DNA of 64,000 bases from Octopus bimaculoides (taxonomy: Eukaryota), in NCBI RefSeq assembly GCF_001194135.2, contig NC_069005.1, positions 776,775 through 840,774 of the forward strand, given 5' to 3'. Shown piece by piece: positions 18,391 to 64,000 of this stretch (the first letter of the stretch is position 1; each line of letters begins with the position of its first letter). A program made the position numbers and the translations under genes. The notes beneath the pieces were generated by a model. That model worked only from the letters and a program-made list of their open reading frames with translations, did no database searches and was not told the DNA's origin.

Positions 18391-20759
18391 AATCGCTAGG
18401 ATCAATCTGGCGGAGATTCGGATCAGGACACCCGCATAAGTTGGGTTTTGACGGGGCGGTTTCCAACAGCTAAAAATCTACCTTAAATCACACACCTTTT
18501 CATCTGAAAATATTTTCGCTTTTTATTTTATTTATATTTACCGAAAAAGCTTCTTCCATCCTTTTTATTAAGTACATAGTGCAAAAAAAAAAAAAATGGC
18601 CAAAATCAGTACATTATAAATTTTTAAAAATTGTTTTTCATAAAGAGTTTCCCCCATCCATTCGAGGGTCGGGGGTGAAGACAAAAATTGGGAAAACCTT
18701 CGTTAAAACGGAAGGAATCCAATTTATGTTGACGTCCTGATTCGAGACTCCGTCCAATTATTTTACCTATTCCATTATTTTTTTGCTCATTTTATGGTAA
18801 AGTTTACGAATATGTACAAAACAGAAGGAGTCCACATAGAAGCTACACGCTGGACTCCCAGAATGTCTACAAAAACAACAAAGTATGGTTTTTGATTGTT
18901 CATAAAACGGTAATTAAAATCTGTTCAATTAGCGGTATTAATCACATGTTCACTCGTTGATTCATAAATTTACTCTACACGTGTGGAATCCCAAAACATC
19001 TGCGAAAAATCTTAAGTTAGCTGTTTTCATGAATATACAATAAAACGGTAATTAACTCAGTTTAATTAACCATTGTAGTAGTTTATGTAAGACGGTGATT
19101 TATTCTTATAAACTAAATGGATGTAGCATGTCGTTACAATGTGATCCCTTTCGTTTTGTACCAAAAAAAGGGATACGTTATTCATGTTCCGATTTGACAA
19201 CTTTATCCCATACTTTATTACCATTCTTATTGTATATTTTCTTAAATCATGATAAATATCTACAATCCATTAAGAATAAAATTCTAGTGAGCTTTTTAAT
19301 GCTTCATGCATTACCATATGGTCATCTAATTAAAATTTGGTGAGGTTTATTCTGCCTTCCAGTTAGTTTAGAATAGAAAAGAAAACGAGAGAAAAACCTC
19401 TACATATTTTATAAAGAAGAATATACTCTTAGCGATTGTTTTTCATGGAGATGGTGTCCCTGAGTAAATTATTTTAATCTCTTAGGCTAAACGCCGCGAA
19501 TGAGATTTAGTGACAATCATGCCTTTCTCAACAACAGTGAAGACTTGCTGAAGAAGCAGATATTCAACGAGGGCGAGAAAACATGTAATAAATCGTAGAA
19601 ATGTACAAGAAATAGCAGGTCAATGACCCTCATGTAAAGGAGGGATACATTACATAGTGACATCCTAGTGNNNNNNNNNNNNNNNNNNNNNNNNNNNNNN
19701 NNNNNNNNNNNNNNNNNNNNNNNNNNNNNNNNNNNNNNNNNNNNNNNNNNNNNNNNNNNNNNNNNNNNNNNNNNNNNNNNNNNNNNNNNNNNNNNNNNNN
19801 NNNNNNNNNNNNNNNNNNNNNNNNNNNNNNNNNNNNNNNNNNNNNNNNNNNNNNNNNNNNNNNNNNNNNNNNNNNNNNNNNNNNNNNNNNNNNNNNNNNN
19901 NNNNNNNNNNNNNNNNNNNNNNNNNNNNNNNNNNNNNNNNNNNNNNNNNNNNNNNNNNNNNNNNNNNNNNNNNNNNNNNNNNNNNNNNNNNNNNNNNNNN
20001 NNNNNNNNNNNNNNNNNNNNNNNNNNNNNNNNNNNNNNNNNNNNNNNNNNNNNNNNNNNNNNNNNNNNNNNNNNNNNNNNNNNNNNNNNNNNNNNNNNNN
20101 NNNNNNNNNNNNNNNNNNNNNNNNNNNNNNNNNNNNNNNNNNNNNNNNNNNNNNNNNNNNNNNNNNNNNNNNNNNNNNNNNNNNNNNNNNNNNNNNNNNN
20201 NNNNNNNNNNNNNNNNNNNNNNNNNNNNNNNNNNNNNNNNNNNNNNNNNNNNNNNNNNNNNNNNNNNNNNNNNNNNNNNNNNNNNNNNNNNAAAAAAAAA
20301 AAAAAAAAAAAGAAACAACCAAATCAGACGTGTTTTTTGTTGGTTGAGATTTAATTTCTTATACTGAATGTTAGATGTTTCGTGTGTTAATCGTGAAAAG
20401 AAAAAAATTATTTACTTGAAATTATGAAAAGATGGCGAAGGGCAGAGATGGTGCTTGTGATGAAGATGTTGAGACATAAATTAGAGTATAGTGCCCGGTT
20501 CATACTGAAAAAAATAGCAGATCGAGTTGCTGGAAGACTAGAAAACAAGGGTTATTGAGTCGAACAGAGAGTGACAGGTGCCAAATCTCCCACAGGTCGT
20601 TCATCCTCCACCTTAAAAGAAGGATACATTTAATAACATAGGTTCAAGTATGTGCACCGTTAGCTAGAAATAAAAATAAAAAAAGAAGAGAACGTTTTAG
20701 ATCGTATATCTTCTGATTAATCGGGGCTGACCCGGCTTAAAACAACAACAACGAAATGT

Positions 20760-43942: not shown

Positions 43943-44580
43943 CTATGTATATTTCCTATTTAGTATTGGGGAAGTTTCATTTATGAGCACATACTCTTGT
44001 ATTTGTCTAAGTGTTGGGTCATCTGGGTGTTTGGATAAAATGCTGATGTCAAGTTGACCCAGGTTGCCTCCATGCTGGTCTCTGGCATATTGGTAGAGTA
44101 TGGACAATTGTTTTTTGTCGTCACATTGTCTCATATGTTCGTTTAGCCGTTCTGCAATGCTCCTAGAAGTTTCACCTATATATGTCATATTCAGGTCTTT
44201 ACAAGCACCTTCTATGCATCTTATGCTGTAAACTACATTTTCTAGTTCTACAGTTAATGCCAGGGATAATCCTACATACCATGCAGTTATCATTGGTGCA
44301 TATGGTATTCTCAATGGGGTACGTCCCACATTGTTGTGATCTGATGGAGTTCCCTGGCTTTTCAACAATCTTAGTGTTGAGTTTGGCCTCCTTCAAAGCT
44401 TTCCTAAATCTACAGGCTAGTTCTCCATGGGCTGTGACTTCTACAAACATCATTCTTTGATATTTGTCAGTTTTATACCACGTGTTCACCCTGTTTGCTT
44501 TGTCACAAGTTCTTTGTATCCTATTCCAGTCTTTGCTTCTATATCTAAGGCAGGTACCATTGGTATCATTGCATATAATG
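43943..44580 (-). mobile_element. Penelope-like retroelement 3' part: linker and GIY-YIG endonuclease, one frameshift
   Basis: Two overlapping frames, YRSKDWNR...KIVEKPG...CTNDNCMVC...INCRTR and NVVYSIRC...TYIGETSRSIAERLNEH...LNRK, joined by a 1-nt shift in the T-run at 44238-44241. Confidence 0.88.
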
Positions 44581-50999: not shown

Positions 51000-51155
51000 T
51001 GTCGAGATTTCCATCAACTGAATTTGACATCAGCACAGATTTGTACCTTCATCAAGAATGTCTCGGCTTGTCATGACAATTCTGCCTGGTTTCCATACAA
51101 TGAAATTCTTTACTGTCAGTTTGCAGACTACATCGGTTGGGGAGTCTTCTTCTTG
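51000..51155 (+). CDS. SLC8B1: NCLX mitochondrial Na+/Ca2+ exchanger, first identified internal exon (CRDFHQLNLTSAQICTFIKNVSAC...ILYCQF)
   Basis: Cys-patterned N-terminal domain of NCLX/CCX proteins. Strong acceptor ccttttcttcttttgcag and donor TTG|GTAAGT. Confidence 0.85.
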
Positions 51156-51430
51156 GTAAGTGACTCATTGATTTTTGCTTGTCTTATCTTGATAGGGACC
51201 AGACAGAAAGTGCAATGAGAGTTACTTGTAAAAGATCCCTATCAAGGACCTGCCTCCTGAGGATCCTGCCTCCAAGACTCTTCCAGGAATAATGAGCTGC
51301 AAGAATGCATGTGTGGACCAATTCCCCACTTCTTCTCTGAAATCATTCCTTCATTGAGTCTCATTTTGTCTTCCACCCCAACCAAACCTTTCCATCTGCC
51401 TTATGAATGTTTTTCTTTTTTGTTTAACAG

Positions 51431-51483
51431 ATTGTCTGGTGGTTGTTGTTGTTCTTGTTTTTGATGATCACTTCTGACCAATT
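51431..51483 (+). CDS. SLC8B1: NCLX exon (IVWWLLLFLFLMITSDQF)
   Basis: CAG acceptor and TT|GTAAGT donor; TM helix aligning to the WLLYLFLILGVTAAKF segment. Confidence 0.88.
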
Positions 51484-52631
51484 GTAAGTAAAACGCTCTT
51501 CCTTAGATATTTGATTGAAATTAATCACCACTAATTACTCTTATCATTAATTTGTTGTCTCATAACTAAACAGTTTCTCTTGATGTTGAGGACATATTTC
51601 TCTGATTCAGTTCAGAAATGCCATCCATTATTGGATCGGTGAGTTACCTTTGATGGTCATGCCATTTGGTATGAAAAGGGTTAAAGTAATCTTGATTCTT
51701 TGATACAATGATGCAGATTTCTTATTGTAGTTGTCTCAGCTTAGCTTTGATTGAAAAAAGCTATTATTAAAGGCATTCCTACTGTGGCCATCTGGTCTTT
51801 ATAGCTGAGGAAGATTTGGTGGTTATTTTTTTTAATACATCAACTTTTTAGTGCAGCAGGCAAAAATTTACAAAGGAAAAGGTCTGAGGGCAGATCACAA
51901 GTTTTAACTTTTATATCTGTGTAAACCTTGTATAAATCTTGTATAATTCGATATACATTAATAAAGATAAGTTTAACACATTAAATTAATGCGTAACGTC
52001 TTCATTAACGCCGCCACTGAATTTATGATGTTTCTATCACTTATGAGGTATTTCTATATTTTTCAGCTTGAGTGTAGTTGGGTTTCAAGGGGGTGGTACA
52101 AACCTAGTAATATGGGTTTTATGGTGAAAACAAAATTTCCTTTCAAATGGCAATCACCGGACGATTTCCTGTTCGAGTCGAACCGTTTTAAATCGTAGTG
52201 AAAACGCAACCTTTGTTTTTTTTTTTTGTATTTTATTTTCATTTTTTATTTGGTGAGGAAGAAAGGGCAGTGCTTGTGACCTTTGCAGATTCTTCAATAT
52301 CGGTAAGATTGATATTACTGGAACCTCTTGAACCATTGTTAGTAAACCCTTGAGGAAAAGACATAATCTGTAGAGGGAGAGTTCCAGAAGGTTGACATTC
52401 TGTAAAGGAAGTACTGGGTGACAGGGATTAATGAGGGGCATGGTGGGATTGGACACAACATTGAGGATGAGAAAAGAAAAGACAAATAGGTCATGAATGC
52501 CCAAGTGGAGCTTGTATAAAATCCAGACAATTCTGAGAAAGAGAAACCATTTTTTTTACAGAAGTCTTTTTTAAAAATTGATGAAAACACAAACAAACCA
52601 TTTAATATTTTCTTCTTTTTTTTGTTGACAG

Positions 52632-52689
52632 TTTGTGTGAGTCATTGCAAGTAATTACAAAAACTTTACACCTGTCTCAGAATATTGCT
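52632..52689 (+). CDS. SLC8B1: NCLX exon (LCESLQVITKTLHLSQNIA)
   Basis: Aligns to CPNLSAISTTLKLSHNVA. Followed by the U12-type donor GTATCCTT. Confidence 0.92.
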
Positions 52690-53083
52690 GTATCCTTAAA
52701 CAAATTCTTTATTTCATATTCTGGTCTAAAGAACATCAAAAGTCTGAGGATGTTCCTACCTTTTGTATTATTGATGAAGAGTGATTGAAATTAAAAGGTC
52801 AACTTTGCCTTTCTTCTTGGGGTCAATAAATTAAGTACCAGTTGTGCACTGGTGATGATGTAATCGACTTAACCCCTCCCCCAAACTTGCTGGCTTTGTG
52901 CTAAAATTTGAAACCAAGATTGTGTCTTAGTGTTGTTGTTTTTACTACTTTTGTTGTTGTCTACTTTGTCTCCTGTTGCCATTGCTAACAACGGCATTGG
53001 GGGAGCAGAATACAGTAATTATAATTATCACTGATGTTATCAACGCTATCACACCTGTTGTTACCTTAACTCCACAAACACAG
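52690..53083 (+). other. SLC8B1: U12-type (minor spliceosome) GT-AG intron of NCLX
   Basis: 5' site GTATCCTTA; branch site TTACCTTAAC at 53061-53070; no polypyrimidine tract before the CAG. Confidence 0.92.
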
Positions 53084-53195
53084 GGTGTCACCTTTCTGGC
53101 ATTTGGAAACGGTGCCCCAGACATATTTTCTTCCATTGCAGCTGTGAAAAACGCCAAACATGGCGATGCCAGTTTAGCATTTGGTGCCTTGTTTG
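53084..53195 (+). CDS. SLC8B1: NCLX exon with alpha-1 repeat (GVTFLAFGNGAPDIFSSIAAV...LAFGALFG)
   Basis: CCX-family alpha-1 signature GVTFLAFGNGAPD. Donor G|GTGAGT. Confidence 0.98.
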
Positions 53196-54644
53196 GTGAG
53201 TCAATATCATTTCTTTTCTTTGTTTGATCACTTAACTACATGCTCTTTGACTGGTGTTGTCTTGTTTATGCTCTTCTCGGCGGCCCATTCCCAGTCTGCT
53301 TCTTGTTGTCACAGATGTCTGTCAGCACCCAACAAACAGATCAGATAATATAAACCTGATACTCTGGGTGCAGCCGAACTCAGTCACTTTCAATTGTACG
53401 ACTGCTCGGTGCTTCTGTGTCTCAGCTGCAAGGGTGATAGGCTTTGCAAGACACCAAAGAATGGTAAAATAGAATCATTGCAGATGGTTAACAGGCAGCT
53501 TAGATTTTAGATTTTATCTGATTCGTGAGAAGATTGTTGTTGGTAATGTTTGCTTAATATCATATTGTGAGATTTCTTATGTAAACTTATTGCTGAGTTG
53601 GCACAGAGAGAAGATACGATGATAATCGAACAAAAGTCAAACTATTCTATTGTAAGAATAAAAAGAGTTCAATGGGTGTTGAAGATAGTGATTGAGGGGA
53701 AAGGGGTGATGGTGGCAGCAGTGGGGATGGTGGTGGCAGTGGGAAAGGAGTGATGGTGGTGGCTGTGGTGATGGTGGTGGCAGTGGGAAAGGAGTGATGG
53801 TGGTGGGAANNNNNNNNNNNNNNNNNNNNNNNNNNNNNNNNNNNNNNNNNNNNNNNNNNNNNNNNNNNNNNNNNNNNNNNNNNNNNNNNNNNNNNNNNNN
53901 NNNNNNNNNNNNNNNNNNNNNNNNNNNNNNNNNNNNNNNNNNNNNNNNNNNNNNNNNNNNNNNNNNNNNNNNNNNNNNNNNNNNNNNNNNNNNNNNNNNN
54001 NNNNNNNNNNNNNNNNNNNNNNNNNNNNNNNNNNNNNNNNNNNNNNNNNNNNNNNNNNNNNNNNNNNNNNNNNNNNNNNNNNNNNNNNNNNNNNNNNNNN
54101 NNNNNNNNNNNNNNNNNNNNNNNNNNNNNNNNNNNNNNNNNNNNNNNNNNNNNNNNNNNNNNNNNNNNNNNNNNNNNNNNNNNNNNNNNNNNNNNNNNNN
54201 NNNNNNNNNNNNNNNNNNNNNNNNNNNNNNNNNNNNNNNNNNNNNNNNNNNNNNNNNNNNNNNNNNNNNNNNNNNNNNNNNNNNNNNNNNNNNNNNNNNN
54301 NNNNNNNNNNNNNNNNNNNNNNNNNNNNNNNNNNNNNNNNNNNNNNNNNNNNNNNNNNNNNNNNNNNNNNNNNNNNNNNNNNNNNNNNNNNNNNNNNNNN
54401 NNNNNNNNNNNNNNNNNNNNNNNNNNNNNNNNNNNNNNNNNNNNNNNNNNNNNNNNNNNNNNNNNNNNNNNNNNNNNNNNNNNNNNNNNNNNNNNNNNNN
54501 NNNNNNNNNNNNNNNNNNNNNNNNNNNNNNNNNNNNNNNNNNNNNNNNNNNNNNNNNNNNNNNNNNNNNNNNNNNNNNNNNNNNNNNNNNNNNNNNNNNN
54601 NNNNNNNNNNNNNNNNNNNNNNNNNNNNNNNNNNNNNNNNNNNN

Positions 54645-54678
<34 letters not shown>

Positions 54679-54712
54679 TGTGTGTGTGTGTATATGTATG
54701 TGTGTGTGTGTA

Positions 54713-55235
54713 CAGGGTGTGGTGAAGTTTGGTGGCCAGATTTTAGGGGTGATGTGGTCGCAGTAATTGTCTGACAGCCATGACTGGGTTCTCCTGCTTG
54801 TGTGGCAGGGTGCAGAGTCCTGTTGCCAGACATAAGTTATTCCGGCAGCCACCCTCTTGACCCAGGGAAGCACTACCTTCTCCAAGCACTTGATGTAGGG
54901 CTCCGTGTTGAGTGTGAGGCCATGTGGGAAGATGATTGGAGGCAAAATGTCGCCATCACTAGTGATCACTCCAAACACCATGAGGTTTGTTGACTGGATG
55001 TTTGATTTTTATCACTGTCAGTACACATCCTCAGACTGACACCCAAACACTCTGAAATGTTCGTATTGGAGCTTCCAGTGTGAATACCAAGCAGTACAGC
55101 ATGTACTGCTTGGTACTCACAGATGGTGCCCAACTGACCCTACTATACTGTGTAGTCGACAAAATCAAAAACAAACAATGCTCATGTGTGAAGTTTAAAA
55201 AAATAAAATGGCAACAATTTACCCATCGCACCCTG
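54713..55235 (-). mobile_element. Internally deleted Tc1/mariner element
   Basis: Open stretch MVFGVITSDGDILPP...YVWQQDSAPCHTSRRTQSWLSDN...IWPPN. Ends CAGGGTG (54713) and CACCCTG (55229-55235). Confidence 0.88.
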
Positions 55236-55302
55236 TTTATATATAATGAGGTTCTATTATTGTTCAATTTGAATTTTATGTCCTGTTATTATTTTTTTAT
55301 AG

Positions 55303-55470
55303 GTGCTGGTCTGTTTGTCACAACAGTCGTTGCTGGGATCATTTCAATAATAAAACCCTTCAAATTAATGGAAAGACCCTTCCTAAGAGATGTTGTCTTC
55401 TACATGGTAACGCTGTTTTTTGCCTTTTATATTCTCTGGAAAAAATCCATCACAAAATACGAATGCATAG
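55303..55470 (+). CDS. SLC8B1: NCLX exon (GAGLFVTTVVAG...RPFLRDVVFY...KYECI)
   Basis: GAGxFVTTVVAG and RPFxRDxxFY motifs; canonical splice sites. Confidence 0.97.
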
Positions 55471-55678
55471 GTGAGTCTGAAAATGTCTTTCAAGTATAAT
55501 CTTCATGTATTTCTCACTCATTATACACATGCACGCACGCACACACACACACACACTGAATCTCCCTGAGAACTTCACTGAGGGTCTGCATGTCTGTGGA
55601 GTGCTCAGCCACTTGCAAGTTAATTTCACAAGCAGGCTGTCCCAAAGTTTTTTTAAAACTAGGACTTATGTATGTATG

Positions 55679-55724
<46 letters not shown>

Positions 55725-56585
55725 NNNNNNNNNNNNNNNNNNNNNNNNNNNNNNNNNNNNNNNNNNNNNNNNNNNNNNNNNNNNNNNNNNNNNNNNNNNN
55801 NNNNNNNNNNNNNNNNNNNNNNNNNNNNNNNNNNNNNNNNNNNNNNNNNNNNNNNNNNNNNNNNNNNNNNNNNNNNNNNCTGTATATTTTTTTAAAATTA
55901 TTTTTATAATTTGTATAGATTTATTTTACTATAAATGCAAAACAACACCATGAAGGAATCGACGTAAGCTTAAATAATAAACCACGATAAATGAACCTCG
56001 ATATTTTGAGAGGTTACTGCATATGTGTATATAAGGGGGGGGAGAGAGAGAGAGAGAGGGGGGGTAAGGTAGATAGGCATATATTGGCTCGTCTCAAGCC
56101 TTACTCTGTTCATCTGCTTTACTTCTTCCTTAACAGCTTTGATAAGGGTTTTTCTTAGAAGTAACTTTCAATGCTGGTCAGTGGTCAGTGGTCAGCATAA
56201 TTTGCACAAGAGGGATTTCGCTGACAATCGGAATTAAATAATTACTTAATTTTGCAAAATCATTGAGTAGTACAAGATTAATCAATTAAGGGACATAATT
56301 AGACAGGTATGCCCTGCTATGCAAATCCGGACTGACCAGTTTAGCTACACAAATACCAACTAAACAGAAATCTCCCTCTCTCTCTCTCTCTCTCCCTCCC
56401 ATATTTCTGCTCTCTCTTTCCCTCCCATACATACATCTGTGCATCTATTTCCTCTCCCCCATACACACTCACTTACACTCTCTCTGCTGTTTTTCTCTTA
56501 CATCTTCGTCCCTCTCTGATTCTCTGACTCTCTCACTGTCCATTACTTTCCTTCTCAAAATTCTCTCTTTGTTTTCTTATTCCAG

Positions 56586-56675
56586 GTTTCATCCTGCTCT
56601 ATGTAACGTACACCTGTGTCGTCGTCATCAGTCGCTACATCTATATTTGGCTGAAAAAGGAGGAGAAATGTCCAT
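56586..56675 (+). CDS. SLC8B1: NCLX exon (GFILLYVTYTCVVVISRYIYIWLKKEEKCP)
   Basis: TM helix aligning to GYLGLYVFYVVTV; CAG acceptor and T|GTAAGT donor. Confidence 0.92.
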
Positions 56676-57275
56676 GTAAGTTGAATACACAGGGCACTGG
56701 GGTAGTGGAACTTCCTTTGAGATCAGTTATGTGTTTAATGTAGCAACTTAAACTCCCTTTAATGGTTAACAGGTTGAAAGAGGAGACATTTGCTCTGTAA
56801 ATTATAACTAGTAAGACGACAAAGTATAGTAGTGACCAAACCATTATTACACTTAGAAGGAGAAGCAGACTGGATTAGGTTAATCTATGTGGAGCTTTAA
56901 ATTCTACAGAAACGGTTGTACATCTAATTATTAGAATATATTTAAATAGAAAAGACAGGATTATATCCTAAACCTTATGATATTATGTCAGAAAAAGGGA
57001 GGCAGCTTATGACCCCAACAAGGACCAGGAGAGGAAGTTCAACCTGAAACCAATTTACTACCTTTTATCTTTTACTTGTTTCAGTCATTGGACTGCGACC
57101 ATGCTGGGGCACTGCCTTGAAGGGTTTTGTCAAACAAACCTCTTAACCACACTGCCATGCCTATGTTCAACGAAGTTATTTTCAAGATTAGCTGCTGCTG
57201 TCAGTGATGATGATGAGCAAGTTTGTTGCTAATGTTGCACTCAATAGCTTTATTATTGTTATTATTATTATTATG

Positions 57276-57480
57276 AAGGCAGTGAGCTGACAGAATTGTT
57301 AGCACATTGGACGAATGCTTAGCAGTATTTCACAGGTTGCTACATTCTGAGTTCAAATTCCACTGAGGCTGACTTTGCTTTTCATTGATAAATTAAGTAC
57401 CAGGGAAACACTGGGGGTTGATGTATTCAACTTGTCCCCTCCCCACAAATGTCAGGCCTGGTGCTTTAGTAAGAAAGGAT
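57276..57480 (+). mobile_element. SINE family B copy
   Basis: ggcagtgagctgacagaattgttagc...ttctgagttcaaattcc...gataaattaagtaccagg, preceded by (TTA)n. Confidence 0.8.
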
Positions 57481-57578
57481 TATCATTATTATTGCTGTTG
57501 TTGTTGTTGTTGTAATGGCCTTTCTAGCCCGATGTCAGCTTCATATTTGTAGCCATCTTCTTTATGATTTTCTTGCAG

Positions 57579-57683
57579 TACTCGACTCCGATGATTCCTC
57601 AACCCAATCTGACAACTCAGAGAAAAATGCCAAAGAGTTCTGTGAAGCTGTCAACAATACAGAAATGAGTGGGAGCACCAGTG
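57579..57683 (+). CDS. SLC8B1: NCLX regulatory-loop exon (LLDSDDSSTQSDNSEKNAKEFCEAVNNTEMSGSTS)
   Basis: Phase 1 to phase 1 and open. Acceptor ttttcttgcag and donor G|GTACGT. Low sequence conservation, so support comes mainly from splice signals. Confidence 0.75.
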
Positions 57684-58489
57684 GTACGTGTGGCGCTGAT
57701 GACCGTTTGATATTGTTGTTGCTGGTCTTTTGTCTTTTTTATCGTTTACTTGTTCCAGTCATTGACAGTGTGGCCATACTGGGGCCACACTGCCCTGAGG
57801 CGTTTAGTTGGACAAACTGACAACAGTATTTGTTTTTTATTTTCTTGAGTCTGGAACTTTTTCTGTTAGTCTCCTTTAATCAAACTGTTGTGTTTTGGAG
57901 AACATAAACAAACCCACACTGGCTCCCAAGTCGTGGGTAGGGACAAACACAAACAGAAAGATATACATACACATACACACATACATATATATATACACAT
58001 ACATACTAACTTCAGCAATGTAACTACACACAGGCTGTTGGTTATTTTTTTTACTTCTCTGGACTTTTCCCTTTCTCCTCTCTGAATGGACAAGATTTCC
58101 AAAAATTAATCAAAGGAGTACAAAAGAAATGACAGAATCTTATTATGAAACGTGGTGATGCCTAATGCTGACAAAATGGGCTGCAGAGGGATTTCCATGG
58201 AGACTGCTTGTTATTTTTGTCGTTGCTAATATTTTTGTCGTTGCTAATATTTTTGTCATTGCTGGTGTCATTCTCCAAATCTGTTGATTCCAATATAAAA
58301 TTAATGTAATTTCTCTACAGAATCACACAACATGTTTCCACACTTTCCTTCTACCACAATACCAAAATCAACCTTATATTAACGAGATCCCTAACCTAAC
58401 CACTTCCTCAAGCATAAACATGTCCTCCTTTTATTTGAGTACCATTACAACTCCAGGGAAATTCAATGGTTTATATTTCCATATTTCAG

Positions 58490-58620
58490 ATAAGGAAGAA
58501 CTTCTAAGTGATGATGAAGACCATAACCCTTTCCAAGATTTTCTCAGGGCAATAAACCCCATGGAACATTGTGACTATGCAGAGGCTCAGTGGTACTGGA
58601 AAGCTTTTTATATTTTAAAG
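58490..58620 (+). CDS. SLC8B1: NCLX exon (DKEELLSDDEDHNPFQDFLRAINPM...WYWKAFYILK)
   Basis: RAINP...YWKA aligns to the RALNP...YWKA segment. CAG acceptor and AAG|GTACTT donor. Confidence 0.92.
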
Positions 58621-59155
58621 GTACTTCTTTTGGGGTTCTTTCTTTCTTTTTCAAACAGTTTACATAATTATGTTTAGTGAACTGCAACATTAACACAAGT
58701 GTAGCNNNNNNNNNNNNNNNNNNNNNNNNNNNNNNNNNNNNNNNNNNNNNNNNNNNNNNNNNNNNNNNNNNNNNNNNNNNNNNNNNNNNNNNNNNNNNNN
58801 NNNNNNNNNNNNNNNNNNNNNNNNNNNNNNNNNNNNNNNNNNNNNNNNNNNNNNNNNNNNNNNNNNNNNNNNNNNNNNNNNNNNNNNNNNNNNNNNNNNN
58901 NNNNNNNNNNNNNNNNNNNNNNNNNNNNNNNNNNNNNNNNNNNNNNNNNNNNNNNNNNNNNNNNNNNNNNNNNNNNNNNNNNNNNNNNNNNNNNNNNNNN
59001 NNNNNNNNNNNNNNNNNNNNNNNNNNNNNNNNNNNNNNNNNGAAGGAAGATATGTCTTTGTTCTTTTTTTTTTTGTTTTTCATTAAAACACATCAAACCA
59101 ACATTTCCCTTGATGACTGCCTTTTATCTCGTTGTTGTTGTTGTTGTTGTTGCAG

Positions 59156-59288
59156 GCTCCTTTGTTATTCATTCAACTCCTGACCATTCCGCTAATAAGT
59201 TACGAAAGACCCAACAAGGGATGGAACCGACATTTAAATTCCTTGCATCTCATCACAGGATCCTTGTTCTTTGTGTTGGCCACTAATC
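59156..59288 (+). CDS. SLC8B1: NCLX exon (APLLFIQLLTIPL...WNRHLNSLHLITG...ATN)
   Basis: LTxP...WxRxLNxLHL motif; canonical splice sites. Confidence 0.95.
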
Positions 59289-59312
59289 GTGAGTATAACC
59301 AACGTAACATCT

Positions 59313-59377
<65 letters not shown>

Positions 59378-59385
59378 TATTATTA
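59313..59385. repeat. (CAT)n microsatellite
   Basis: Directly visible. Confidence 0.97.
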
Positions 59386-59386
59386 A

Positions 59387-59815
59387 AGGAGGTGGCGAGC
59401 TGGCAGAACCGTTAGCATGTTGGACGGAATATTCTGAGTTCAAATTCTGCCGAGGTCGACTTTGCTTTTCATCCTTCCATGGTCGATAAATTAAGTACCA
59501 GTGAAACACTGGGGTTGATGTAATCGACTAGTCCCCTCTCCACAAAATTTCAGACCTTATGCTTACAGCAGAAACGGTTATTATTATTATTGTTATTATT
59601 ATTATTATTATTATTATTGAGAAGGTGGCATGCTGGAAGAATTGTTAGCATGCTGGGCAAAATGCTAGGTTGGATTTCGCCCACCTTTACGTTCTGAGTT
59701 CAAATACCACTATGGTCAACTTTGTCTTTCATCCTTTTGGGGTCAATAAAATAAGTACCAGTTGTGTACTGGGGCTGATGTTATTAACTTAGCCCCTTCC
59801 ACAAAGTTTCAGACT
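59387..59815 (+). mobile_element. Head-to-tail pair of SINE family B copies separated by (TTA)n
   Basis: Copies at about 59387-59580 and 59621-59815, each with ttctgagttcaaat...aagtaccagt. Confidence 0.85.
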
Positions 59816-60131
59816 CAAATGACTGGATTTAAAGAACACTTGGCTGCTATTCTCTGCAGGTTTCTTAGGGATCTTTTTAATGAAAATTTAATTTACAAAC
59901 CCCAACCTTCATGAAACAAATTTGCAGTCCTAAACTGGGCCCTTTAAATGCCTCATAAATCTTAAACAGGCAAAACAACAATAGGGGCCCCCCCTCATAA
60001 CATACACCCAAGCCTGCATATAGATTAAAACGGATTCTGCATGTTGCACACAAATTCATTACTATTTATTGCGTTACGTTCTGGACTAAACTAAAATATC
60101 GTTGGTCAACCTTTTTCTTTTCTTGTTTCAG

Positions 60132-60247
60132 TCCATCACACATACATCGGTCATCTGCCAGTGTTAGTGTTAGCACTGTTGATTGGGTCGGTCCTGGCAG
60201 CCATCGTTTTCTTCACGTCTTCCTATACACCCCCAACCTATTACCCA
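60132..60247 (+). CDS. SLC8B1: NCLX exon (LHHTYIGHLPVLVLALLIGSVLAAIVFFTSSYTPPTYYP)
   Basis: TM helix; CAG acceptor and CCA|GTAAGT donor; phases consistent. Confidence 0.92.
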
Positions 60248-61009
60248 GTAAGTAGATATTTTATCTTCAGTATTTTGTGACAAGCACTGTACACTTGATA
60301 CAACCAGTCGACCATTCCAGTCGTACCCAGGAATCTGCACTTTGGAAGTATCTGTAAATAAAGTCCATTTCTGAACAAACAAGAGCAGATTTATTCACTA
60401 AGTGGGATCATGCCATCTGCAGGCACTTCATGAATATCAGATGGAAAAAATTCTATGTAGAGTTTGATACTCACCTGATAGTGTCTGAGTGTGCAAATAA
60501 GTTTGTCCTAACAGGGTGCCTCAATGTATGAATAAACACAGAAATAAAAAAACATAAATTGAAAGTGAAAACAGAAATAAATATTTGGTATTTAAAAAAA
60601 CAAAATCAATAAAGAAATAATGTTTGCTTTCGATGAAAATAATTTGAAGGGATTCAGTTTTGTAATGTAATTTTTAATTGCTTAGTCAGAGTAGTAAATG
60701 AGGGGTCATGACATATTTTAGGGGTTTTATAGGAGGGGAAGTGGGTAGGAAGGTATAACTCCTTTTTCAAGGCTTTTGCAATTGTTTGGAGGGGCCAGGA
60801 CAGCATGGCTGACAATGTGGGTTGAGGGTTAACAAGGCAACAAATGGTTTCATGTGAAGGGGTCTTCACAATTATTCAAGCATGCAACACAGAAGGGTTG
60901 GTACTCATCTGTTTTGGATGGGACAAGTACCTAATCCAACTGAATCTAAATTACATTTTATATATTTATATATGCATGTCTCTCTCTCTCAATATATATA
61001 TATATATAT

Positions 61010-61125
61010 ATATGGGAGAATATACAAATAATAACAACAGACGAGGACAGGTGGTGTAAATAACAAAAGTATATATTAGTATGACGCTCGGGAATACGGA
61101 AAGTCTTTGACGTTTCGAGCTACGC
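61010..61125. mobile_element. Short interspersed repeat, probably Penelope-derived terminal fragment
   Basis: aacagacgaggacaggtggtg...gtctttgacgtttcgagctacgc; the gacgtttcgagc motif is typical of PLE termini. Assignment by recognition only. Confidence 0.45.
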
Positions 61126-61231
61126 TATATATATATATAAGCCACGACTTCCATGACACAACAGTCACTAACCCAGAAATAAAACAAGCCTTTCTTTCTC
61201 TCATTTAACAAACTGTTTGTGTTTTTTACAG

Positions 61232-61309
61232 GCATTTAGTTTCCTCAGCTTTCTGATGTCTGTGTTGTGGATCTACTTGGTGGCAAACGAGGTTGTCAAC
61301 CTGTTGATA
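61232..61309 (+). CDS. SLC8B1: NCLX exon (AFSFLSFLMSVLWIYLVANEVVNLLI)
   Basis: SxxWIxxxAxEVVxxL motif; canonical splice sites. Confidence 0.96.
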
Positions 61310-62000
61310 GTAAGTACTACCAACCAGCACTATTACTACTACTACTGCTACTACTACTACTGCTACTGCTGCTACTGTTGCTGCCACTTCTGCTGCTATT
61401 CGTATCTTGACAGTATTTATTTTCTTTAATAGTTAGGTCTGTAGCCAGGGTCTTCACAGCCCCTCTAAAACCAGTTATGGGTTTGATGTAGGCGATGCTC
61501 TTTTTGAAAAGCAGCCAGTAAAACATGGGCAGCTGTGTGAATATTAAGGGTTCTGCCTTAATATAAGCAAAATACTTGGAACAGAACATGTGTTGAGGAA
61601 AATGTTGTATCTCTAAGCTGTGGGGAAGGGCTGAGACAAATGTCTGTGTTGTATTCCAGGAAGATAACTCACTACTCCCGCTGCCATTTGCCTTCCTCAA
61701 GTTTTCAGTCTGTAACAGCTCTTATCCTTCACTCACCCTAGGATGCTGGGTGTGTCTCAGCGAGTGATTGTAACAAACATGTGGAGTAAAAGGAAATAAT
61801 AATAATAATAACAATAATTATAATAGGTTACTTACTGTAACTCAGTAGGAGGGCACTTGTTGTAGCTCGATGTTAGGATTCTTTTCTTTTCCAACAGTCT
61901 AATCTGTTGAGTGTATATGAAAATGATAATAATAATATTAATAGTAATAACAATAACATTAACAACAACAACAATTATAATATTCATATTCTTCTTGCAG

Positions 62001-62076
62001 ACGTTTGGTATTGTCTTCAACATGAGTAATGTGGTTGTAGGGGTAACATTCTTGGCCTGGGGCAACAGTCTGGGTG
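62001..62076 (+). CDS. SLC8B1: NCLX exon with alpha-2 repeat (TFGIVFNMSNVVVGVTFLAWGNSLG)
   Basis: CCX-family alpha-2 signature GxTxLAWGNSxGD. Confidence 0.97.
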
Positions 62077-62420
62077 GTAAGTAAGGACTTACAATATCGT
62101 CTGGTCTTTCTTTTAATCTTCTTTTGATTTTTCCATTTTTATTTCATACTTCATTAAGATTCCTCACATTTTCCATTGCGTTGTTGTCTTTATTGAACTC
62201 ATAAAACAGAATATGTCAAATGTGCTCCTTTGTCACTTCCATTATAGCTTTGAAAAAATAACTGTTCAAATCAAACTGCACTCTTCAAAAGTTGCACTAA
62301 GAATAAGTACAAGGTAAAATTACCACCTGCTTTTACAGCAAGTTGATGCAGGTAGTTTATCCTGTCCCCTTCCGACTTTTCATGCAATTGAAAAAACTGC
62401 ATCACTTATGGGACAACCCA

Positions 62421-62480
<60 letters not shown>

Positions 62481-62552
62481 ACAAACACACCACACATAAG
62501 CCATTCCCCACTTTGAAGGCTTCCTTAATGTTCTAGAATTTATCTTTTCCAG

Positions 62553-62633
62553 ATCTGATCACTGACATCACCATCGCCAAGAACAACAACCCCCGAACTG
62601 GTATCTCGGCCGTGTATGGAGGACAAATGTTCA
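62553..62633 (+). CDS. SLC8B1: NCLX exon (DLITDITIAKNNNPRTGISAVYGGQMF)
   Basis: Second half of alpha-2. Followed by the perfect U12-type donor GTATCCTTT. Confidence 0.95.
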
Positions 62634-63569
62634 GTATCCTTTGCTTCTACACAAAATGACGACAATGACGATGATGATAATAATAATAATAATAATATAA
62701 GGATTTCTATTAATATCATATATATTCAAACTTGCATACATATGTGCATGCCAACACACAAACACACAGACATTATGTCTGTCTGTCTGTCTATACGTAA
62801 CTCAAGCCACTTGGTTTGAAGTGCAACACGAGTGGAAAAGTGATTTCGTCAAATGTTGGCATGAAGAGTCATCTCTGAAGTCATGCAAGGAAAGAGGTTG
62901 CAGAAGACATTTCAAGATGTTAAACTCAAGGATGAGTTAACAACTAATAATGTATGTATGTGTGCATGTGAGTCTAGGATATTTACACCCCATGGACAAT
63001 AAACCCCACCACCAAGGACAATTATCCCTGAGGACAACAGATGATGACTTAAAACTTCTTAATATATTGGAAAGGGGTTAATTAACCAAGTGGGATAATT
63101 GTCATTGGGGAGAATTGTCCTATGAGGGGTAATTGTCCTGGTACGGTGCATGTATGTGTGTGTGTAACGGTAAGGCCCCAGAATCTTTTAGGGTGTAGTG
63201 TTGTTTATCTTCAGTTTCATGGTGTTAAATAACAGATGACAGATAACTACACACCTGGATAATACACCAACCTATTGCAGGAAGCTCCCGTACCTGATCT
63301 GGTGGTATTATTCCTAAACAGATAAATCAACTGAACAATCAAGTGAATTTCTCAATTATAAAAACCAAATCTCTGCAGCAGATAAATAATTAGAATATCT
63401 ATTCTAATTCTAGTCTTTCTCTCTCTCTCTCTCTCTCTATTACTCCTCTCTCTATTTCTGTCACTCTCTCCCCCTCTCTTCATCTCTTTCTCACACAACA
63501 CTCCTCCCAGCTCCCAACAAACACATATTCCAAAATTTGTTGTCTTCTCTTAACCCAAATACACCACAG
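62634..63569 (+). other. SLC8B1: U12-type (minor spliceosome) GT-AG intron of NCLX
   Basis: 5' site GTATCCTTT; branch site TTCTCTTAAC at 63545-63554; no polypyrimidine tract before the CAG. Confidence 0.9.
62975..63142. mobile_element. Foldback-type MITE with GGACAAT subterminal repeats
   Basis: Left-arm motifs ggacaataaacccc, ggacaattatccc and ggacaac are mirrored by right-arm gggataattgtca, gggagaattgtcc and ggggtaattgtcc. Confidence 0.65.
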
Positions 63570-63634
63570 ATCTTGTTTTAGGAATTGGGATTCCTTTTGC
63601 AATTTCTACATGGTCAAGACAGGAAGATTTTGAA
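63570..63634 (+). CDS. SLC8B1: NCLX exon (NLVLGIGIPFAISTWSRQEDFE); gene continues beyond the window
   Basis: Completes the GGxxFNxxxGxG motif. CAG acceptor preceded by a U12-type branch site; donor GAA|GTATGT. Confidence 0.9.
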
Positions 63635-63660
63635 GTATGTAAATTTTATTTATAGTTCAT

Positions 63661-64000
63661 GGTACGCTTGCATTAAATGAGGATGCAAAGAAAGAGGTCT
63701 GGAGATGCCACTACGATAGATTGCTTAATAAAGAGAATGAATGGGAGAAAGAGAGCCTGCCTTATGTCGACCCAATAGAGGGACCAGCTATCCGAGTTGA
63801 TAGTACCAGGGTAGATAAAGCAATTAAGAGTATGAAGACCGGGAAAGCCCCCGGCCCATCAGGAATCACTGCAGAGATGCTCAAAATATCTGGCAGTGTT
63901 GGCTATAGCCTAGTCACCCGTATTACGAACCAGGTGATACACGAAGGAGTCATACCCTATGACTGGTGTAGCAGCATCATAGTCAACTGCTACAAAGGTA
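63661..64000 (+). mobile_element. RTE-clade LINE, 5'-truncated, ORF open to the window edge (linker and start of the RT domain)
   Basis: Stop-free frame GTLALNEDAKKEVWRCHYDRLLN...AIKSMKTGKAPGPSGITAEMLK...EGVIPYDWCSSIIVNCYKG, with the KxGKAPGPxGIxAEMLK and PxDW...YKG pre-RT motifs. Confidence 0.92.

Follow-up and report, generated by a model that had tools for sequence, protein, structure and literature searches.

The window, i.e., the whole 64,000-nucleotide stretch of Octopus bimaculoides DNA that was analysed, carries on its forward strand a gene identified by homology as the octopus orthologue of NCLX (SLC8B1, previously named SLC24A6 or NCKX6), the mitochondrial Na+/Ca2+(Li+) exchanger. 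The gene model was built by tblastn with the NCLX protein of Octopus sinensis (RefSeq protein, P0076), the splice sites being read by eye, and comprises the following parts:

51000-63634, forward strand: partial NCLX/SLC8B1 model of 14 exons, the 5' and 3' ends of the gene lying outside the model
51000-51155, forward strand: exon 1, from protein alignment
51431-51483, forward strand: exon 2, 53 nt, IVWWLLLFLFLMITSDQF, which restores a gap-free alignment
52632-52689, forward strand: exon 3, directly upstream of the first U12 intron, encoding (F)LCESLQVITKTLHLSQNIA
53084-53195, forward strand: exon 4, alpha-1 repeat, encoding GVTFLAFGNGAPDIFSSIAAVKNAKHGDASLAFGALF(G)
55303-55470, forward strand: exon 5, from protein alignment
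56586-56675, forward strand: exon 6, from protein alignment
57579-57683, forward strand: exon 7, from protein alignment
58490-58620, forward strand: exon 8, from protein alignment
59156-59288, forward strand: exon 9, from protein alignment
60132-60247, forward strand: exon 10, from protein alignment
61232-61309, forward strand: exon 11, from protein alignment
62001-62076, forward strand: exon 12, from protein alignment
62553-62633, forward strand: exon 13, upstream of the second U12 intron
63570-63634, forward strand: exon 14, downstream of the second U12 intron

The spliced translation of 474 amino acids shares 94.3% identity with the O. sinensis protein, with zero gaps. When the joined-exon peptide was used as a query, the top match was the O. 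sinensis 'mitochondrial sodium/calcium exchanger protein' and the second came from Argonauta hians, followed by SLC8B1 proteins of molluscs, echinoderms and vertebrates. Pfam Na_Ca_ex (PF01699) was found in two stretches of the translation (E=1.4e-48), where the alpha-repeats read GVTFLAFGNGAPD (alpha-1) and GVTFLAWGNSLGD (alpha-2). Regarding its membership in NCLX/SLC8B1 of the CaCA superfamily, the protein is assigned by the presence of two Na_Ca_ex domains with alpha-1 and alpha-2, as well as by its orthology to annotated exchangers; the mitochondrial location of the octopus protein and its Na+(Li+)/Ca2+ exchange are predicted from the family. An extension of the first exon through GTAAGT to about 51206, as suggested by tblastn, was rejected, as its frame fails to join the next exon, and it is also ruled out by the real 53-nt exon 2, with which the alignment is free of gaps.

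The initial annotation described all but one of the other donors as U2-like, and this holds for the whole model: 11 of its 13 introns are U2-type, with GTRAGT-like donors (GTAAGT, GTGAGT, GTACGT or GTACTT) and long T-rich pyrimidine tracts, and the sole exception besides the donor at 52690 is the one at 62634, GTATCCTTT. The assembly being fragmented, runs of 835, 155 and 336 N bases lie in the introns at 53196-55302, 55471-56585 and 58621-59155, respectively; they are flanked by microsatellites, with many more such runs upstream, and the lengths of the affected NCLX introns are therefore unreliable.

Other features surround or interrupt this gene. On the reverse strand, 1696-2031 holds an ATG-initiated open reading frame of 111 amino acids with a Pfam ACAS_N match (acetyl-CoA synthetase N-terminus, E=1e-11) and an N-terminus resembling a mitochondrial presequence, which is probably the first coding exon of an opposite-strand gene for a short-chain acyl-CoA synthetase. 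Upstream of NCLX, a reverse-strand frame at 43943-44368 bears a GIY-YIG nuclease domain (Pfam PF01541, E=1.6e-7) and is probably what remains of a mobile element, Penelope-like or of another kind. Within NCLX introns, a transposase-like frame (...WQQDSAPCHTS...) lies at about 54700-54981 on the reverse strand, adjoining an N gap, and a reverse-transcriptase-like frame (...GKAPGPSGITAEMLK...) lies at 63643-63999 on the forward strand and runs past the window end; neither of these two frames gave a Pfam match at E<=0.01.

U12-type introns are recognized by a /RTATCCTT donor (the slash marking the splice boundary here and below), a TCCTTRAY branch site about 10-20 nt from the 3' end and the lack of a pyrimidine tract. 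Their termini are GT-AG or AT-AC, rarely others, and switching between subtypes is known. The intron that separates exon 3 from the alpha-1 repeat has this organization, with the following elements:

52690-53083, forward strand: U12-type GT-AG intron, 394 nt, phase 0, assigned by motifs, matrix rank and orthologous introns
52690-52698, forward strand: U12-type 5' splice site in the context GCT/GTATCCTTA, 14.0 bits, rank 2 of 119,724
52795-52959, no strand assigned: dispersed SINE-like repeat, one copy of which lies within the intron and at least nine others elsewhere in the window by blastn
53060-53071, forward strand: branch-site 12-mer GTTACCTTAACT, 12.3 bits
53071-53083, forward strand: A/C-rich spacer tccacaaacacag, 13 nt, ending in the CAG 3' splice site, by direct reading

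The upstream exon ends in ...CTG TCT CAG AAT ATT GCT (...LSQNIA), the intron opens with gtatccttaa at 52690 and closes with ...gttaccttaactccacaaacacag at 53083, and the next exon opens with GGT GTC ACC..., encoding GVTFLAFGNGAPDIFSSIAAVKNAKHGDASLAFGALFG. The junction 52689/53084 is fixed because the 474-residue alignment is gap-free there and neighbouring site pairs all break the protein, which places the intron exactly between ...SQNIA and GVTFLAFGNGAPD, as first proposed; its use in octopus is thus predicted from protein homology. The branch core CCTTAAC occupies 53064-53070, and its second A (53069) lies 14 nt from the final intron base at 53083, in agreement with the earlier reading. In the octamer ACCTTAAC at 53063-53070, the A residues at 53068 and 53069, 14-15 nt from the intron end, are the candidates for the branch point; the octamer opens with an A where the consensus has T, which was counted against the U12 class. 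Between the branch site and the 3' splice site a pyrimidine tract is absent, its place being taken by the A/C-rich spacer, as had also been described. MIDB gives exactly the donor 12-mer GCTGTATCCTTA as the 5' splice site of SACM1L and of human INSIG1. The donor, the branch site and its spacing, the absence of a tract, the GT-AG termini and the orthologues of the same class (see below) all place 52690-53083 in the U12 class.

The SINE fragment that the initial annotation located at about 52790-52920 corresponds to the dispersed repeat listed above, whose copies occur on both strands of the window and are 71-83% identical by blastn. A related SINE-like fragment is present in the orthologous Argonauta intron (L007, 12188-12251), the insertion being either shared or independent. 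Rfam at gathering thresholds gave no match over the whole 64-kb window, so no RNA gene of a known family was detected in the intron.

For a quantitative assessment of the splice signals, log-odds matrices were derived from 77 human minor-intron 5' splice sites and branch sites (MIDB Table S2, Olthof 2019, PMC6717393), with the base composition of the window as background and 119,724 scorable positions on both strands. The two highest-scoring donors of all these positions are 62634 (15.1 bits, rank 1) and 52690 (14.0 bits, rank 2), and both are exon ends of one gene, defined independently by protein homology. The score of the 52690 donor exceeds the median of the 77 human sites (13.6 bits), which bears out its earlier description as U12-like; for branch sites the human median is 11.3 bits, compared to 12.3 bits for GTTACCTTAACT, and an equally good match at a permitted distance lies upstream of 0.13% of the AG sites in the window. 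By the same matrices, the donors of three U2-type introns reached -15 to -22 bits, and these introns had no match to the branch site. Other high-scoring donor strings, at 20627(-), 2378(-) and 28711(+), and copies of TCCTTAAC are tied to no exon and occur at chance frequency.

The rank 1 donor opens the other exceptional intron of the gene:

62634-63569, forward strand: second U12-type GT-AG intron, 936 nt, phase 1, in the alpha-2 half, conserved in 7 of 7 fetched species

This intron follows ...AVYGGQMF, with the donor TCA/GTATCCTTT and a CAG acceptor. Its branch-site 12-mer CTTCTCTTAACC at 63544-63555 (core TCTTAAC) lies 16 nt from the 3' end and scores 9.1 bits, a value reached at 0.9% of the window AG sites; the 3' region reads cttctcTTAACc, then a 15-nt spacer ending in cag, then AT CTT GTT... 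(NLVLGIGIPF). With U12 introns at 52690 and 62634, there is therefore one minor intron per protein half.

Whole gene loci were then compared from Chanos chanos, Argonauta hians, Mytilus californianus, Strongylocentrotus purpuratus, Rhinopithecus roxellana, Microtus ochrogaster and Uloborus diversus. In all seven fetched species, both U12 introns are kept at the identical codon and phase with U12-type donors. As to the first intron, its forms in these species are as follows:

Argonauta: GCT/GTATCCTTT, GT-AG, with a weakened branch site GGCTTAAC
Mytilus: GCA/GTATCCTTT, GT-AG, with TTCCTTAAG
Uloborus (spider): GCT/GTATCCTTT, GT-AG, with TCCTTAAC
S. purpuratus (L009, 7274-10597): GCA/ATATCCTTG, AT-AC, with TCCTTAAC and ending in AC
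Chanos (L006, 2222-2690): GCT/GTATCCTTT, GT-AG
Rhinopithecus (L010, 12702-12843): GCA/GTATCCTTT, GT-AT, with CCTTGAC 13-14 nt from the end
Microtus (L011, 8621-8723): GCA/GTATCCTTT, GT-AT, with CCTTGAC 13-14 nt from the end

At the pyrimidine-rich 3' end of the Chanos first intron (ctgttctgttggtcctcgctctttgcag), a U12 branch site is not recognizable, and this intron may be a 'minor-like' or 'hybrid' one drifting toward the U2 type. Together with the weak branch site of Argonauta, the pyrimidine-rich end in Chanos implies that the 3' signals of the first intron drift in some lineages. Two further eukaryotic contigs (L001 and L002) also carry the first intron. In addition, three short homologous gene calls run through the 3' end of the intron and back-translate to a (T/A)CCTTRAC branch site before GVTFLAFG, and their contigs confirm donors of the form ...SHNIA/GTATCCTT[AT]. 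As judged from the sequences of these animals, the two U12 introns have been held by SLC8B1 since at least the bilaterian ancestor.

Contig L005 starts inside the intron and covers its 3' end only, so it was excluded from the orthologue comparison; its positions 1-90 hold ACCTTAAC and then ttgagacaa directly before GGGGTAACA, and the orthologous intron there apparently terminates in AA, which would be a further non-canonical U12 3' end. Meanwhile, the homologous calls P0001-P0004, P0008, P0027 and P0028, from metagenome/Logan contigs, read ...NIAGVTFLAFG without an intron, which may reflect intron loss in those organisms or contigs derived from transcripts.

Both introns have counterparts in published catalogues. 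As listed in MIDB Table S1 (Olthof 2019, PMC6717393), mouse Slc8b1 has two minor introns of 120 and 684 nt, the first at chr5:120520661-120520780 and the second at chr5:120530397-120531080, the latter being the counterpart of octopus 62634-63569. In Table S2, the mouse strings GCAGTATCCTTT and ATCCCCTTGACA agree with the vole's first intron, and the human strings TCAGTATCCTTT and GCTTCCTGAGCT are an exact match to the monkey's second intron, TCAGTATCCTTT being the human 5' splice-site 12-mer that is identical to the octopus 62634 donor. Sheth 2006 (PMC1557818) lists 'SLC24A6 GT-AT GT-AT Conserved' for human and mouse among the non-canonical U12-type introns (Table 3), an entry that is the form of the first intron seen here in mammals. 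The gene is not mentioned in one supplementary file of the IAOD paper.

When human and mouse SLC8B1 are set against the octopus gene, their first minor introns share the codon (...N[IV]A/GVTFLAFGNGAPD) and phase 0, the donors GCA/GTATCCTTT and GCT/GTATCCTTA are of the same U12 type and the distance from branch site to 3' end is 13-14 nt in both. However, the mammalian intron is GT-AT with the core CCTTGAC and 103-142 nt long, whereas the octopus intron is GT-AG with the core CCTTAAC, has 394 nt and contains the SINE-like insert. The second SLC8B1 minor intron differs from the first in its position, in the alpha-2 half, and in being phase 1 and not phase 0. Other minor introns of ion-transport genes, such as those of voltage-gated Na+ and Ca2+ channels and of the SLC9A and SLC12A families, have the same 5' splice site and branch consensus; as they belong to unrelated genes and positions, they show only that the octopus case fits a well-described class. 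Deep conservation of minor introns and their enrichment in ion-transport genes are described in two papers (PMC6865273, PMC8767276). Moreover, O. sinensis was among the species compared for minor-intron conservation by Larue and Roy 2023 (PMC10639083), who found minor introns relatively enriched in molluscs, and mollusc orthologues of human minor introns are mostly classed as minor by Olthof 2024 (PMC11347168).

The proposal that a U12-type intron immediately precedes the alpha-1 repeat of NCLX is therefore upheld, on the strength of the motifs, the rank under the matrix and the introns of the orthologues, and we assign a probability of about 0.95 to the reading of 52690-53083 as a U12-type GT-AG intron of octopus NCLX that is orthologous to the catalogued SLC8B1 minor intron. 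The intron is not novel: the same intron is found in MIDB (mouse), in Sheth 2006 (human and mouse) and in 7 of 7 fetched bilaterian species, and the comparison of position and class that had been recommended shows it to be conserved. By this homology, the octopus intron is identified as the one already catalogued in human and mouse SLC8B1, and it is conserved, already known and ordinary.

Its removal in octopus by the minor spliceosome is predicted from the class, as would be any slow or regulated kinetics of this step. Following established U12 splicing, the U11/U12 di-snRNP would read GTATCCTTA, the rigid 5' splice site, jointly with ACCTTAAC, the branch site, with the fixed, short 14-nt spacing from branch site to 3' end substituting for a pyrimidine tract, and U4atac/U6atac.U5 would finish the catalysis, joining ...SQNIA to GVTFLAFGNGAPD. 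If the first intron were retained, translation would run into the following stop:

52786-52788, forward strand: in-frame TGA, after 32 intron-encoded codons

Neither alpha-repeat would then be made, as had been anticipated. Retention of the second U12 intron adds 8 codons. The early stop in either retained intron means that a functional exchanger would not be made, and a transcript retaining the first would be expected to stay in the nucleus or be degraded.

From this consequence it has been proposed that the octopus U12 intron acts as a putative regulated, rate-limiting switch for NCLX output in tissues, an idea that we regard as doubtful. Besides the early stop codon, it can draw on the slow splicing that one paper (PMC4066798) reports for U12 introns in some genes, and on MIDB (PMC6717393), where retention (mis-splicing index of 0.24 in one tissue) and alternative splicing are recorded around a mouse Slc8b1 minor intron; however, this mouse signal belongs to the second minor intron and not to the first, the literature search found no paper connecting Slc8b1 with minor-intron regulation, and the gating argument is generic, as it fits equally well the roughly 700 human minor-intron genes (699 according to PMC7507305). 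More specifically, the U12 pair of cephalopod NCLX could form a putative 'detained intron' switch, in which minor-spliceosome activity would tune mitochondrial Ca2+ efflux, e.g., in neurons or muscle, which we consider somewhat less probable again.

Regarding the splicing class itself, the intron could belong to the transitional 'minor-like' or 'hybrid' classes described by Olthof 2024 (PMC11347168), with a U12 donor and a 3' end usable by either spliceosome while drifting toward the U2 type. The differing 3' signals among orthologues point in this direction, as seen in the pyrimidine-rich Chanos intron without a branch match and in GGCTTAAC of Argonauta, but the octopus signals are strong (both above the human MIDB medians) and the octopus spacer lacks a pyrimidine tract, which makes this explanation very improbable. 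The least probable explanation is that U12-like motifs arose by chance at an ordinary U2-type intron removed by the major spliceosome: such motifs are indeed not over-represented in the window (5 bare RTATCCTT strings found against 5.5 expected, with CCTTAAC-like strings at chance frequency), but the two best U12 donors of about 120,000 positions fall on independently defined exon ends of one gene, each is paired with a branch-site match at the right distance without a pyrimidine tract, the signals recur at the identical codon in molluscs, a spider, an echinoderm and vertebrates, including the AT-AC form of the sea urchin, and GTATCC, mismatched at +4, +5 and +6, makes a poor U2 donor.

For the U12-type reading, the value as a discovery is small, SLC8B1/SLC24A6 having been listed as a U12-intron gene since 2006 and mollusc genomes having already been surveyed. 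The octopus model with two U12 introns can be useful to annotators, as gene finders tuned to U2-type introns can misplace such junctions. What is added here is that, in the compared loci, both SLC8B1 minor introns are seen directly to keep their position, phase and class from octopus to primates, within one orthologous series for the first intron that contains GT-AG, AT-AC and GT-AT termini.
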